From the sequence record KY499642.1: a DNA stretch of 64,000 nucleotides; one strand, 5' to 3'. The notes below the pieces were generated by a model. It saw only the letters and a list, made by a program, of their open reading frames with translations, made no database searches and was not told the DNA's origin. Made by a program: the position numbers and the translations under genes. Below, one piece after another: positions 39,844-45,142 of the stretch (its first letter is position 1; every line of letters starts with the position of its first letter).

Positions 39844-40665
39844 ATGGCCATTACTACTAACTTTAATCAAACTCCAGAAGAGCTCATTCTAGAGTTGTTT
39901 AATGCTGATAATGGTACCGCGTTTACGTCACAAGAGTTAGACATCCTAGACGGTCATAAAGACTTACTAGGTGGTCGTCGTAGTGTTACTGCTAAAATTT
40001 TAGACCTAAGTTTGGTCGACGCAGATATCCCTTACGCAACTTTAACTTTTCAACCAATCGTGATACCAGAGCAGTTTTCACAAATCGAATTAGAGATTCG
40101 AGAAGTGGACTGTTTCGATGAGAACCATGTTGTTCAGTACGACAAGATTATGGCAGAGATTACTCGACGCTATAAAATCTTAGTTGATAATGTTAACTTT
40201 GGGATTAGACAAGACGGCGGCGTCTTCTACTTCTTCGCTACTGAGGCTAACCGTGCCTACACTGGTGAAGTTCCAATCGCGTTAACATTATCGTTCTGGA
40301 CACGTGTGCCGAATCGAGAATTGAGAGGGTTCTATGCTAAAGAGCCACTGGAGTGGGCAATTGAAGACCAGACCGTGTCTGCGTTTACAATGCCTGAAGA
40401 CGGATTAGATATTCAACGTAAGACTTGGTACCAAAACTTTACTGAGATTCGCAACCTCTTAGAAGTTGTGGATGGACGTCTCGTGTACCCAGACCAGTTG
40501 AATACTTACCTTGAGCAATACGGGATTCCACCTATTCCGGCAGATGCGCCAGTGGTTAACCGCATTGTCCGTAATCCAGACGAGAATAGTAAATATTCTC
40601 ACATTCTTAAAACGACGGGTCTACCTGCGAAGGAAACCCATTACCTACACTATTACGGAGCTTAA
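39844..40665 (+). CDS. Virion fibre-type protein (N+C domains)
   Basis: 273 aa; LFNADNG, RAYTGEV, RVPNRELRGF; family shared with neighbours. Confidence 0.6.
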   Translation: MAITTNFNQTPEELILELFNADNGTAFTSQELDILDGHKDLLGGRRSVTAKILDLSLVDADIPYATLTFQPIVIPEQFSQIELEIREVDCFDENHVVQYDKIMAEITRRYKILVDNVNFGIRQDGGVFYFFATEANRAYTGEVPIALTLSFWTRVPNRELRGFYAKEPLEWAIEDQTVSAFTMPEDGLDIQRKTWYQNFTEIRNLLEVVDGRLVYPDQLNTYLEQYGIPPIPADAPVVNRIVRNPDENSKYSHILKTTGLPAKETHYLHYYGA

Positions 40666-40668
40666 TGC

Positions 40669-41535
40669 ATGAGTGCTGTACTATTTTATCAACCGCAGAT
40701 GATCATTGACGCGATTAACTCAGCGAATGGTCTAGCGTTGAAGAACACTGACGTAATGTTGTCAGTTTCAACAAACCAAGAAAACAACTGGTTGGTCGAG
40801 CAAGGCCACGGTAACACTGTATGTCGTGTAGTAGCGACTAAAGAAGGTGATTACGAAGGTGAAACTATCGTAGCTTACGACCGTGTTGACTTGACCATGA
40901 TCAAGAACATGGTAGGTGGCTTCCTAGGTATTCCACAATCGGTGACGACTGTTCACCAAGCACTGCCTTATTTTGCGTCACGCTACGGCATCACGTTCTA
41001 CGCAGATGATATCGTAGACGGCCCTGTAACGTGGACTGAAGGCGTTGGTGCATCATTCCAACTGAAAGCATCACCTGCTTCTTTGATTTACCATGGTGAA
41101 GTAACGTTTGTTTCCTCTATCTTACCGGAAGAGTTAGCGAACATCGTTGTTAATACAGACCTGCCTGAATACCCAGTATTCACACACGCAACTGACAAGT
41201 ACTTTGCAGAAGCGTTAGTGTACGGCGTTAACTTCTCTAACGAACAAGAGCAGCTATCTGCTATGACGACTGAGAACTACGACCCTGCGGCACTGCAACT
41301 TATCTTGAACGCCAATACGTCTATCTCTTGGACTATTGAAGATAACCCAGATGCGATCGGCTGTCTGTTCAACTCACAAATCACGTACAACGGTTTGAAC
41401 TCTGGTGTTGAAATCTCCAACTCAAGCTTCAAGTACCTGATGGTAGTTGAACTACGTAACGATTCGAACGTAGTAGAAGGTTCTCTATTGATCCACTACA
41501 ACGATTACTCGAACGAAGACTCACTTCCACTTTAA
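40669..41535 (+). CDS. Virion fibre-type protein (N+C domains)
   Basis: 288 aa; AINSANG, YDRVDL, SLIYHGEV, ITYNGLN. Confidence 0.65.
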   Translation: MSAVLFYQPQMIIDAINSANGLALKNTDVMLSVSTNQENNWLVEQGHGNTVCRVVATKEGDYEGETIVAYDRVDLTMIKNMVGGFLGIPQSVTTVHQALPYFASRYGITFYADDIVDGPVTWTEGVGASFQLKASPASLIYHGEVTFVSSILPEELANIVVNTDLPEYPVFTHATDKYFAEALVYGVNFSNEQEQLSAMTTENYDPAALQLILNANTSISWTIEDNPDAIGCLFNSQITYNGLNSGVEISNSSFKYLMVVELRNDSNVVEGSLLIHYNDYSNEDSLPL

Positions 41536-41559
41536 TCCTGAGCCGTACAAGGTAGAGAT

Positions 41560-41880
41560 ATGTTAGTACAAGAAACACACCTAAACTACATCCAAGATGT
41601 TGACTTCATGGAAGTGCGTCCACTTATGGTTGACATCGCTGAAGGTACTCGTCCGGTCGCTGACCTAGTCGATTTCCTTTCTCGTGTTACTTCTGACCTT
41701 TGGTCTTCTGAAGCTGGTGAAGTTAGCCTTAAGGGCGCTGAGCTGGTTTACTTCGGTATGAACAAACGTTCGTTCCCAACGAAGCCAATCTTCAACGAAG
41801 TAATGATCATCAAACTTTCTGATGAACACACCATTAAGTTTGCAGGTAAGAAACTTTACTTGATGGTAGGTCGCAAGTAA
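41560..41880 (+). CDS. Stand-alone C-domain of the fibre-type family
   Basis: 106 aa; VDF...L....TS..W...L....LVYFGMN....F..VMIIKL aligns with the C-terminal third of 40669. Confidence 0.6.
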   Translation: MLVQETHLNYIQDVDFMEVRPLMVDIAEGTRPVADLVDFLSRVTSDLWSSEAGEVSLKGAELVYFGMNKRSFPTKPIFNEVMIIKLSDEHTIKFAGKKLYLMVGRK

Positions 41881-41899
41881 GTAATCGTCAGGAGGTATT

Positions 41900-42883
41900 A
41901 TGATTCTTTTTAAATCACCAAACCCGCTTGACGATATCGCTACAATCCTTCGTAATGCAAACCCGGAGACAGCTTCGGGTTTAAATGGTAACAACATTGC
42001 CATTGATAACATTAAGGCTATTGACCCTCTTGCAAATGACGGGTACAATACCGAATGTGAAGTACGAATGGTTGGTATTGATACAGCGGTCGGTCTGATG
42101 CGTGTTCGCTTCAACCGTCTAAAACTGTCTGAAATCATTCCAACTGCGGCAGGTAACCGTGTGCGTGTTGAGATTCCTACGAAACTGAACAAGTACATGA
42201 GCTATCCAGAATTAGCAGACCGAATGAGTAAAGCGTTCGGAACCATGCTAAAGGCAGATGGTTTATACAAAGACTTCACCAACACTAACTCAGTTGCAGT
42301 TAGTAAAGGCTTCACAGCAAACGCGGGTATCAGCATTAACCCTGAGTCACTGCGCTATGAACCGGAAACGTTCTCGTTCGAAGTGTTCGGTCTTGGTATT
42401 GCACTAAGTATCGTTGTGACTACTCCGGGCTGTGTACCGTTCCGTGACGCTAATGGTTTCCCTAAGTATGAACATGCGTACTGGGATGACATCGGCTACG
42501 TTGATGCGGAAGCGAAGCGTTCATGCATCATGACGTTGGGCACATTGGACTTCACCTCTGTGTGGGGTACTGACCCATCTAACGTTATTGTGCCTGGCGA
42601 TAGTGCGGCTGGTGAGAAGGCTTGGAAGTTCACGGATGTCGCGTTTGAGAAGATTAACTTAATCCTCGCAACGAACGGTCTACCTGCACTGCCTGCGAAA
42701 GACTTCGCGGCATGGTACCGTGGTGGTACAGGCGCTTACCAAACGCCTAACTGGACTGAAACTAACTACCATGTCTACATCCGTTATTCACACTTGGATT
42801 ACGACTACAAAGAGGTAGCTAACCTTCATCCAGAAAACGCACCGCATCGTGACAATCTAATTCTACCATACCGTACTGTTTAA
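41900..42883 (+). CDS. Virion fibre-type protein, paralogue of 42895
   Basis: 327 aa; DNIK.IDP..NDG.NT, ESLRY.P, DFTSVWG.DP.NVI, KF.DVAF.KIN shared. Confidence 0.7.
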   Translation: MILFKSPNPLDDIATILRNANPETASGLNGNNIAIDNIKAIDPLANDGYNTECEVRMVGIDTAVGLMRVRFNRLKLSEIIPTAAGNRVRVEIPTKLNKYMSYPELADRMSKAFGTMLKADGLYKDFTNTNSVAVSKGFTANAGISINPESLRYEPETFSFEVFGLGIALSIVVTTPGCVPFRDANGFPKYEHAYWDDIGYVDAEAKRSCIMTLGTLDFTSVWGTDPSNVIVPGDSAAGEKAWKFTDVAFEKINLILATNGLPALPAKDFAAWYRGGTGAYQTPNWTETNYHVYIRYSHLDYDYKEVANLHPENAPHRDNLILPYRTV

Positions 42884-42894
42884 GGAGGTTCGCT

Positions 42895-43911
42895 ATGATG
42901 TTCTTTAAGAAAGCGGACCCTCTTGAGGAGATCGCTGGTATTATCCGTACTGCTAACCCTGGCTTAGCTGACCGTATCAACAAAGATAACGTAGTTGTTG
43001 ATAACATTAAGGTGATTGACCCTGCAACCAATGACGGGTTTAACACTCAGGGTTACGTTCGTGTTCTTGGTGATATGAATGATGTGGTAGGTATCGTTAC
43101 GATTCGTTGGAACCGTATGAACTTGCGCAACATCATTCCATGGAACATGGTTCGTGTTGAAGCACCATCTGAGAAAGGTGTTATCCGCCTAGACAACCTA
43201 GAGAATGTATTCTCTAAAGGTTTGGGTACGAAGATGGAATCAAGTGGTCGTTACAAAGACTACAGCTATCCGACTGCACGTGGTCAAGCAAAAGGTACTG
43301 ACTTGGAATACCGAGTTCGTCCATTAGCTGAATCGTTACGATACACTCCGGATGAGTTCTCGTTCCGTATTTACTGTTTGGGTAGTTCGTTAGATTTCGC
43401 TGTGACCGACGCAGCGTGTTTGCCGTACTACGAAGCAGATGGTCGTTTGTTCATCACTAACCCACAACGTAGTTACTGGAACCCAACGCCGCGTATGCCG
43501 GGAGATACCTGGGTTGATGCGGCAGCTACGTTAGGTATGGTTGATTTTACTTCGGTGTGGGGCGAAGACCCGCGTAACGTTATCATTGAGCATGGCGAGG
43601 TCGATAAACCACGCTACAAGTTCGACGATGTGGCATTCGCTAAGATTAACCAACTGTTAGCCGCGCAAGGATTGCCACCGTTACCCGATCCGTACTTCCA
43701 AACGTATCACTTTCAATGGGCTAACTACCGCGACCGTGGCTGGCGATACTTCTGTACGCCAATCCCACAGACGTTGAATTACTCACTGCGTATTGACCGC
43801 GCGGGGTTACAATACGACTACGCGGCTATCTCAGGTTTGGTATACCCATATGGTCATAGCTACTGGGCACACACTGAGTTGCACTGGTACTTAGGTTACC
43901 AAGTGAAATAA
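42895..43911 (+). CDS. Virion fibre-type protein, paralogue of 41900
   Basis: 338 aa; same shared motifs; aromatic-rich divergent C-terminus. Confidence 0.7.
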   Translation: MMFFKKADPLEEIAGIIRTANPGLADRINKDNVVVDNIKVIDPATNDGFNTQGYVRVLGDMNDVVGIVTIRWNRMNLRNIIPWNMVRVEAPSEKGVIRLDNLENVFSKGLGTKMESSGRYKDYSYPTARGQAKGTDLEYRVRPLAESLRYTPDEFSFRIYCLGSSLDFAVTDAACLPYYEADGRLFITNPQRSYWNPTPRMPGDTWVDAAATLGMVDFTSVWGEDPRNVIIEHGEVDKPRYKFDDVAFAKINQLLAAQGLPPLPDPYFQTYHFQWANYRDRGWRYFCTPIPQTLNYSLRIDRAGLQYDYAAISGLVYPYGHSYWAHTELHWYLGYQVK

Positions 43912-43920
43912 GCATAAGTT

Positions 43921-43955
43921 AGAGAGAGAGAGGGCTTCGGCTCTCTCTCTCTTTT
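43921..43955 (+). terminator. Intrinsic terminator
   Basis: (AG)6GGC-TTCG-GC(TC)5T hairpin plus short T run. Confidence 0.8.
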
Positions 43956-43999
43956 ATGTGTCTTGATGTATTTAAAAATGACGGTTCCTATTATATAGT

Positions 44000-44127
44000 G
44001 AACCAACCGTTTGCTGATAATGTTTAGACGGCATCATCAGCGTTTCGTGACGTAGCGGAGATTAAAAGGTCACTCTCGTATTCTAACTGCCAGACAACGA
44101 GAGACTCCGTTGCGTCACATCTTTTTT
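44000..44127 (+). ncRNA. Candidate structured small RNA or attenuator leader
   Basis: 10-bp hairpin 44013-44041; 14-bp stem 44047-44060/44105-44118 with two G-U pairs enclosing 7-bp stem 44073-79/44097-103; followed by T6. Confidence 0.55.
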
Positions 44128-44148
44128 CTATTTGTTAAGGAAAAGACA

Positions 44149-44421
44149 ATGAACAAACAAACACTAGCAAACTGGCTTTCAGGACCAATCACAAACAAAG
44201 AACTAGACGTGCTCGTTCTAGAGATGGATATGGTTATGCGTCAGCCTGAAACATGCAGCGCGTTGGGAACACTCCGCGAATTAGAGTTCCGTAAGCACGA
44301 CCACGATGGTGATACTGCATTACCAATGTCGTACACTCGTGAAGATGGGACTATCCAAGATAACGAAGTTGCATTCATGTATCCGAACCGTGTGGCGCTG
44401 GTACCAATCCGCAATTATTAA
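44149..44421 (+). CDS. Small hypothetical protein between two structured non-coding regions
   Basis: 90 aa from ATG after AAGGA SD. Confidence 0.7.
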   Translation: MNKQTLANWLSGPITNKELDVLVLEMDMVMRQPETCSALGTLRELEFRKHDHDGDTALPMSYTREDGTIQDNEVAFMYPNRVALVPIRNY

Positions 44422-44424
44422 TTA

Positions 44425-44592
44425 TTCGACTTAGCCTTATATCGGGCCTACGTTTATTGCTATCAAACCCTTGTCTATAGGGGAATCTTGTGAGTAGAGG
44501 CTTACAGAATTCTTCGACGGTGGCCATGTGGAAGAAGATAACAATAACTACCCCAGATGCCTCGACTGGCTAGGTAGATCCAATACGCATTT
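44425..44592 (+). ncRNA. Candidate structured non-coding region or long 3' UTR
   Basis: Four consecutive hairpins, no ORF of 60 aa or more, closed by UUCG terminator. Confidence 0.35.
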
Positions 44593-44617
44593 AGGGAGCT
44601 TCGGCTCCCTCTTTTTT
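44593..44617 (+). terminator. Intrinsic terminator
   Basis: AGGGAGC-TTCG-GCTCCCT-CT6. Confidence 0.9.
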
Positions 44618-44680
44618 ATTTGCCTTAAAAAATACTGACACAGTTATGTTTTGTATTATTAACAAACCGGAGATAGAACA

Positions 44681-45142
44681 ATGAGTTTACTGCGTAAGGG
44701 TATCGTACTCGCACTTAAGAAGAAGATGGTGAAGTTACGTGCCAACCCGTCTAATCTCATCATGCTTTGTGTGCAAGAGAAACTTGCAGATGAAGGTTAT
44801 ACCGCAACCGCCCATGCCGGATTACTGGCAGTCGTTAAAGAAGGTGATGATAAACCTACCTTGACAGTTTTCGAATTGAAAGCATTCCCTGCACTCAACC
44901 ATGAACTGTTCAGCCTAACTACCGAAGTTCGTAAGTATGCAGGGCGCGATGGTAAAGACTGGAGCGCATTCGCAGCACGTGCAAAAATTGTGTTAGAAGT
45001 CCCTAACTACATTCCTACTCGTGATGAGGTGACTGAGTTTGGTTATAAGCATCTGACCAATGAAGGTAATGCTGAAGGTAAGAAGTACAATAACGAAGAC
45101 GTAGTGCAAGCGGTTTACGATAAAGTTATCGCAGAGCTGTAA
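44681..45142 (+). CDS. Hypothetical protein
   Basis: 153 aa, GGAG SD. Confidence 0.75.
   Translation: MSLLRKGIVLALKKKMVKLRANPSNLIMLCVQEKLADEGYTATAHAGLLAVVKEGDDKPTLTVFELKAFPALNHELFSLTTEVRKYAGRDGKDWSAFAARAKIVLEVPNYIPTRDEVTEFGYKHLTNEGNAEGKKYNNEDVVQAVYDKVIAEL

Follow-up and report, generated by a model that had tools for sequence, protein, structure and literature searches.

Immediately upstream of the gene gp051 of Vibrio phage pVa-21 lies a real, evolutionarily conserved structured RNA, encoded on the + strand (positions 43998–44127). On balance, its sequence and that of its homologues make it probable that an RNA of about 120–130 nt is released there by an intrinsic terminator of its own, with read-through feeding gp051. 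The RNA is new and belongs to a type known from other giant phages. The stretch of DNA analysed here – 64,000 nucleotides, referred to below as the window – is the initial 64 kb of the pVa-21 genome (KY499642.1), to which positions 43400–44700 are 100% identical, with equal coordinates. pVa-21 is a phiKZ-like jumbo phage of 232 kb that encodes its own multisubunit RNA polymerases, and the RNA region is unannotated in either GenBank record containing it. The main features are as follows.

42895–43911: gp050, one of two tandem paralogues (with gp049).
43921–43954, + strand: terminator of gp050, from the terminator scan and inverted repeats I4/I5; left edge of the cassette.
43967–43999, + strand: conserved promoter-like region, from scan and conservation.
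43998–44012, + strand: presumed 5′ single-stranded leader of the RNA, from the segment table, with a conserved CCAAC.
44013–44041, + strand: hairpin 1, in which a 6-bp basal stem and one mismatch are topped by a conserved UUUAGACGG loop.
44047–44118, + strand: hairpin 2, the terminator hairpin, from fold and covariation.
44064–44096, + strand: near-invariant 33-nt block, from the segment table, running from the internal-loop AAAAGGUC through the 5′ arm of the inner stem to the apical loop.
44119–44134, + strand: terminator tail, made up of a 3-nt spacer, a U6 tract (44122–44127) and the continuation CTATTTG.
44135–44148, + strand: ribosome-binding region of gp051, with AAGGA at 44137–44141 and the ATG following at 44149.
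44149–44421, + strand: gp051, encoding a 90-aa protein and found after every copy of the RNA cassette.

The sequence features that an earlier note on this DNA had picked out all lie where it placed them, and its description of the region as highly structured is borne out by folding. The 129-nt stretch has a minimum free energy of −44.9 kcal/mol (z = −4.76), a value that none of 200 shuffled sequences matched, and folds into exactly two hairpins. Hairpin 1, given in that note as 10 bp long, does form between 44013–44022 and 44032–44041, with nine of the ten positions paired and one A·C mismatch. The basal stem of hairpin 2 has the proposed 14 bp (44047–44060 with 44105–44118), its two non-Watson–Crick positions being U·G and G·U on the + strand, as had been claimed. 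It encloses a 12-nt 5′ internal loop (44061–44072), a 7-bp inner stem of CTCTCGT with ACGAGAG (44073–44079 and 44097–44103), an apical region (44080–44096) and a 1-nt bulge at 44104, while an internal GTCAC (44069–44073) duplicates the last five nucleotides of the 3′ arm of the hairpin.

The RNA matches no Rfam family, and the earlier note had recognised none. A covariance-model search of the whole window against Rfam 15 at gathering thresholds gave no match, and a search of 43850–44250 with E values up to 10 returned only weak matches, which fell on the upstream terminator and not on the + strand of 43998–44127. ARAGORN found no tRNA or tmRNA gene in the window. A small open reading frame inside the element was considered and rejected, none being conserved, and nothing is encoded on the opposite strand. 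Nor does the locus have the make-up of a type III (ToxI-like) toxin–antitoxin system, there being no tandem repeats and no PADLOC match for gp051 and its neighbours. Pairing of the 5′ tail with the loop of hairpin 1 as a pseudoknot was likewise discarded after comparison by eye, its registers differing between lineages.

Stronger evidence for a conserved fold comes from a MAFFT alignment of eight copies (pVa-21 and seven homologues), which represent only about 5–6 independent lineages. Covariation among homologues, which the earlier note had suggested looking for, is found in both hairpins. Across the eight copies, 99.5% of the 192 cells of hairpin 2 and its inner helix are paired, compared with 28–59% when partners are slid, and four pairs of the 14-bp stem have changed on both sides (e.g. 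G–C to A–U, A–U to U–A and G–U to U–A); none of 500 shuffles reached the resulting covariation score. Hairpin 1 has 94% of its cells paired, against 4–43% with partners slid, and three of its six basal pairs have changed on both sides. In 21 cells the pair is G–U or U–G on the + strand and would be an A·C mismatch on the opposite one, so selection is acting on the RNA of the + strand.

Conservation is not confined to the stems. Within the block 44064–44096, only one A/G position and one 1-nt indel vary across the eight copies: the apical region is the same in all of them save for that 1-nt indel, and the internal-loop AAAAGGUC does not vary. The same invariance is seen in the UAGACGG of the hairpin-1 loop. 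In the inner stem, the 5′ arm is invariant and the 3′ arm changes from A to G only, so that the pairs are kept. The 1-nt bulge between the two helices, by comparison, has been seen as A, G, C and U among the copies, showing that positions free of constraint drift. Even between the most divergent copies, the RNA is still 78–83% identical, versus 61–65% for the gp051 coding sequence. The block is presumably a recognition surface for a partner. With about 45 invariant unpaired nucleotides – above a typical base-pairing seed – the pattern looks more like that of a protein-binding or tertiary-folded RNA, a point against the reading favoured here.

Upstream of the RNA, the proposal of a promoter-like motif of its own (TATTATATAGTG at 43989–44000) has held: the region is conserved and bipartite. 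An A-tract or −35-like box, TTTAAA (43971–43976), is separated by a 17-nt spacer from an invariant ATTATATAGT (43990–43999) that includes a −10-like TATAGT (43994–43999). The combination (43971–43999) scores 9/12 in a sigma-70-type scan and falls within its 16–18 nt spacing, as a consensus match only. In the six full-length homologues both boxes are kept, and the sequence between them changes with no change in its length, which is the pattern of a working bipartite promoter; 43967–43999 may well act as one. By analogy with a motif found elsewhere in this phage, the RNA would start at about 43998–44000, or, by the sigma-70 rule, at about 44005–44007.

That other motif is 40 nt long and recurs, unannotated, in 22 copies in pVa-21, all on the + strand, with none in a shuffled genome; nine copies lie in the window.

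5987, 12230, 15031, 27966, 30767, 32311, 37705, 53663 and 61874, + strand: copies of the recurrent 40-nt motif.

It fits the description of early promoters in polymerase-encoding jumbo phages (PMC7598289, PMC11512511) and presumably represents the early or virion polymerase promoter class of pVa-21. The promoter-like region of the RNA has in common with it an A-tract box and a start-proximal TAnAGTGAA box, set 4 nt closer together. That it might be a further member was rejected, since it scores about −27 bits on the 40-nt position weight matrix where members score 26–51 bits, and the motif of the ATTATATAGT region is unique in the 232-kb genome. Two points count against the cassette reading of this region: the motif matches the recurrent phage motif only in part and falls into no other class, and phiKZ-like phages have been reported not to use the host polymerase (PMC7598289).

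The 3′ end has the layout of an intrinsic terminator. The 14-bp basal stem ends at 44118 and is followed by the U6 tract, which is U6–U8 in all eight copies. The genome has 17 copies of a T-run followed by ATTTG, where 0.5 would be expected, and most of them come after a canonical hairpin.

37692, 39714, 44122, 44612, 57699 and 61938: T-run + ATTTG terminators in the window (11 more elsewhere in the genome).

The CTATTTG continuation after the RNA is thus shared with the canonical terminators of pVa-21, and this tail marks the 3′ end of the RNA as a terminator of the phage's own type. Several pVa-21 terminators directly abut the next ribosome-binding site and ATG; this being common, read-through into gp051 is plausible, and the arrangement suggests that read-through is routine in this phage. 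Many of its terminators have a UUCG-type loop. T-run + ATTTG sequence flanks the cassette, and the idea that it is a target-site duplication left by the arrival of the cassette was abandoned because it is the general terminator tail of the phage.

The terminator upstream of the cassette (43921–43954) had been described in the earlier note as that of a fibre operon; the terminator itself is there, and the ‘fibre’ label is not supported. For gp049 and gp050 the matches are to an unnamed PHROG family only, with DUF7941 and a ‘virion structural protein’ family appearing below the cut-off. The two are the last genes of a five-gene block, gp046–gp050 (window 39844–43911), in which they form tandem paralogues of one PHROG family; some relatives have the block and others do not, the site behind the gp045 terminator being the same. 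As for gp051 itself, its protein has no Pfam, PHROG, PADLOC or PDB match, and its AlphaFold model is of low confidence (pLDDT 56.7).

A phage collection yielded one relative only, pVp-JHP1101, about 79% identical over the region, and a query of a large protein collection with gp051 yielded ten relatives (54–94% identity), whose contigs were then examined. Apart from the RNA of pVa-21 itself, one relative phage and metagenome contigs contribute seven distinct copies, each upstream of gp051; the RNA is complete in L002, L115, L116, L129 and L130 and cut at the 5′ contig end in L118 and L127. It is found immediately upstream of gp051 in all eight copies and seen nowhere else, an association that would fit a role in cis too and that is partly built into the sample, since all homologues were reached through gp051.

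Three arrangements are seen. In pVa-21, JHP1101, L115, L116 and L129, gp045 and its terminator are followed by gp046–050, a second terminator, the promoter–RNA–terminator unit and gp051. In L130, L132 and L134, the structural block is missing, and one large deletion has reduced gp045 to a 3′ remnant, which is followed by the terminator, the promoter–RNA–terminator unit and gp051. Finally, in L119 and L121–L126, gp045 and its terminator lead straight to gp051, both the block and the RNA being absent. The RNA is also absent from more distant relatives (L135, L136, L142 and L143). Among relatives, the cassette behaves as an accessory module, which some carry and others do without. Since gp051 of the RNA-less lineages is closer to that of pVa-21 (76–82% identity) than is gp051 of some carriers (54–62%), the simplest history would be a gain within the clade followed by at least one loss, or an exchange by recombination.

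The RNA is single-copy, covariance model R1 finding no paralogue in the whole pVa-21 genome, and it was not found outside this phage clade in the collections searched. A 22-nt invariant pattern had no match in IMG/VR, the JGI metagenomes or 185,579 species genomes, and protein-guided scans of the JGI metagenomes and IMG/VR produced no further carrier; 112 IMG/VR loci brought up by exact 15–16-nt pattern scans were all chance matches by blastn. E. coli genomes gave no match either, a result that is uninformative at that database size.

Taken in order, the events at this locus would run as follows. Positions 43967–44134 would constitute a self-contained promoter–RNA–terminator cassette, in which transcription starts a few bases past the invariant ATTATATAGT box. 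The transcript would begin with a short tail and then fold into hairpin 1 and, after it, hairpin 2; the latter, long and irregular, would together with the U-tract stop the polymerase at about 44125–44128 and so leave a stable RNA of about 120–130 nt, while a read-through fraction runs on into gp051. The released RNA would itself be the functional product, acting in trans, and the loops of 44064–44096 and of hairpin 1 would contact a partner, be it protein or RNA. We prefer a released small RNA to a switch because the conserved nucleotides are part of the terminator hairpin itself and because there are relatives without the element; that close relatives keep gp051 in its absence argues against an indispensable role in cis.

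Searches within the phage for a pairing partner of such an RNA gave nothing above background, a further point against this reading. The best duplexes of four conserved single-stranded segments with the whole pVa-21 genome were at chance level and did not lie at coding-strand start codons. Long-range pairing of the 5′ part of the RNA with gp051 codons 6–12, which appears in minimum-free-energy folds, was rejected as no better than that of random windows or non-cognate pairs; pairing with a second conserved RNA 3′ of gp051 was not significant, and a complementarity between the 5′ arm of the upstream terminator and the apical region is restricted to pVa-21, of low complexity and not conserved. 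A near-copy of the apical loop, consisting of a 10-mer and a 6-mer with one base missing, occurs on the coding strand of an RNA-polymerase subunit gene (L141:15403–15422, pVa-21 215403–215422, outside the window); being in the same sense, it permits no pairing, and it is probably due to chance.

The earlier note had offered a small RNA or a riboswitch/attenuator as the function. What the two have in common, a conserved structured RNA on the + strand, is now established, and a riboswitch of known class is excluded. There remains a cis-acting attenuator, riboswitch-like or protein-dependent, for which the RNA would be the 5′ leader of gp051 and the genes beyond; we hold this to be possible but rather unlikely, and the same low likelihood attaches to its detailed form, in which a ligand or a phage protein bound to the conserved loops decides whether the basal 5 bp of the terminator or an alternative GUGAC/GUC(A/G)C hairpin forms, and thereby sets transcription into gp051. 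The constant position of the RNA directly upstream of gp051 would suit such a device, as would the nucleotide-metabolism gene block downstream, and long invariant loops on covarying stems are the pattern of aptamers and protein-binding leaders. The alternative pairing, also raised in the earlier note, draws on the internal GUCAC that repeats the end of the 3′ arm, and RNAalifold, with the 3′ arm omitted, can form the 5-bp hairpin in all eight copies.

This much of the pairing proposal stands, but both variable positions of the alternative helix change to wobble only and none of its pairs has changed on both sides; with one-sided changes alone, nothing positively supports it. All folds without the terminator are less stable by 12–19 kcal/mol, and they are lineage-specific rather than conserved. 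The conserved loops, moreover, sit inside the terminator hairpin and not upstream of it, and no known riboswitch family matches even with E values up to 10. Relatives keep gp051 and its ribosome-binding region without leader RNA or promoter, and another terminator follows gp051, so attenuator control would reach this one small gene only. A more ambitious version – a new class of structured regulatory RNA of nucleus-forming jumbo vibriophages, whose invariant loops either fold up into a tertiary pocket or offer a phage protein a platform, and in which a metabolite or phage factor switches between the basal terminator helix and the GUGAC/GUCAC hairpin, making it a riboswitch-like or protein-dependent attenuator read by the non-canonical phage RNA polymerase – strikes us as distinctly improbable.

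Two further explanations would deny the RNA any function as such. The cassette could be punctuation, a promoter with a strong terminator or a recombination scar between terminators, as might be expected in a region that is a hotspot of module gain and loss and in a phage whose frequent terminators often abut the start of the next gene. We judge this very improbable: the ordinary terminators of pVa-21 are short GC stems with small loops, and a plain terminator needs neither an invariant 33-nt block nor a second covarying hairpin, nor conservation above that of the neighbouring protein gene. Hardly credible, finally, is an element acting as DNA – a protein-binding site, or a replication or packaging signal using cruciform or single-stranded hairpins – to which the small inverted repeat (CTAT..ATAG) within the invariant ATTATATAGT, unique in the genome, might point, but which is at odds with the tolerance of G–U on the + strand only and with a promoter–RNA–U-tract layout that runs in the same direction as all neighbouring genes.

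Several known systems resemble the cassette. Stand-alone phage small RNA genes with their own promoter and intrinsic terminator exist, for example that of the OOP RNA of lambda. The pVa-21 cassette would be, like OOP, a compact promoter–RNA–terminator unit of about 80–130 nt in a phage genome, with the terminator hairpin being part of the mature RNA; unlike OOP, which is antisense to its target gene, it has nothing encoded opposite and no complementary phage target was found. In bacterial trans-acting small RNAs, the terminator hairpin and U-tail serve as a chaperone-binding module of Hfq or ProQ type. The 3′ hairpin with a U6–8 tail, a U-rich linker between the hairpins and conserved single-stranded stretches recall these RNAs, whereas the invariant part is far longer than a usual seed and includes one helix strand. 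With attenuators and riboswitches built on terminator platforms, the element shares its place as a leader between promoter and gene, an end at an intrinsic terminator, a short alternative pairing and conserved loops; it differs from them in matching no known class, in having its conserved nucleotides inside the terminator hairpin, in an alternative helix that is far weaker and lacks compensatory support, and in being dispensable in close relatives.

The nearest parallel is found in the 5′UTR small RNAs of 201phi2-1 and phiKZ, detected by ONT-cappable-seq (PMC11512511, PMC10914365), which likewise belong to phiKZ-like phages with their own multisubunit RNA polymerases, have a terminator soon after the start and upstream of a coding gene, form units of less than 250 nt and retain their 2D structure among relatives. 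In 201phi2-1, 11 small RNAs have been mapped, eight of them arising by premature termination in a 5′UTR and one being conserved in phiKZ, EL and PA3 (PMC11512511). Premature termination was recognised there by a start site followed within less than 250 nt by a termination site, upstream of a coding sequence (PMC11512511); in pVa-21, the boxes at 43971–43999, the tail at 44122–44127 and the coding sequence at 44149 are laid out in this way, although they are read off the DNA here and the published definition uses mapped ends. The conserved example in those phages precedes a tail protein gene, unlike the pVa-21 RNA, which precedes the 90-aa gp051. The published RNAs rest on transcript mapping, with little covariation, and the pVa-21 RNA on covariation, the two having been compared by description only.

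To our knowledge, the non-coding RNAs of jumbo phages are only beginning to be mapped, and almost none has comparative support. In the pVa-21 RNA two helices clearly covary, the invariant loop block is unusually long, and natural relatives that have the RNA can be set beside others that do not. This makes it a well-defined candidate for studies on the role of such RNAs where a phage uses its own polymerases for transcription inside the phage nucleus. Two GenBank phage records gain a gene that their annotation lacks, and the RNA would constitute a new family.

Some further observations concern the DNA beyond gp051. A second conserved non-coding block (window 44480–44618) separates gp051 from gp052. 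It has a canonical terminator (44593–44616) at its end and is found in all lineages, including those without the cassette RNA. It has no Rfam match, and covariation in its several predicted helices is modest, with 94% of cells paired and both sides changed in two pairs. The block probably represents either a further structured RNA or a 3′UTR of gp051 that is itself structured. On the 3′ side of this second terminator (window 44619–44680), relatives share, ahead of gp052, an A-tract box and, about 11 nt after it, a TATG...TTTGTA box, which possibly represent a further class of promoter.
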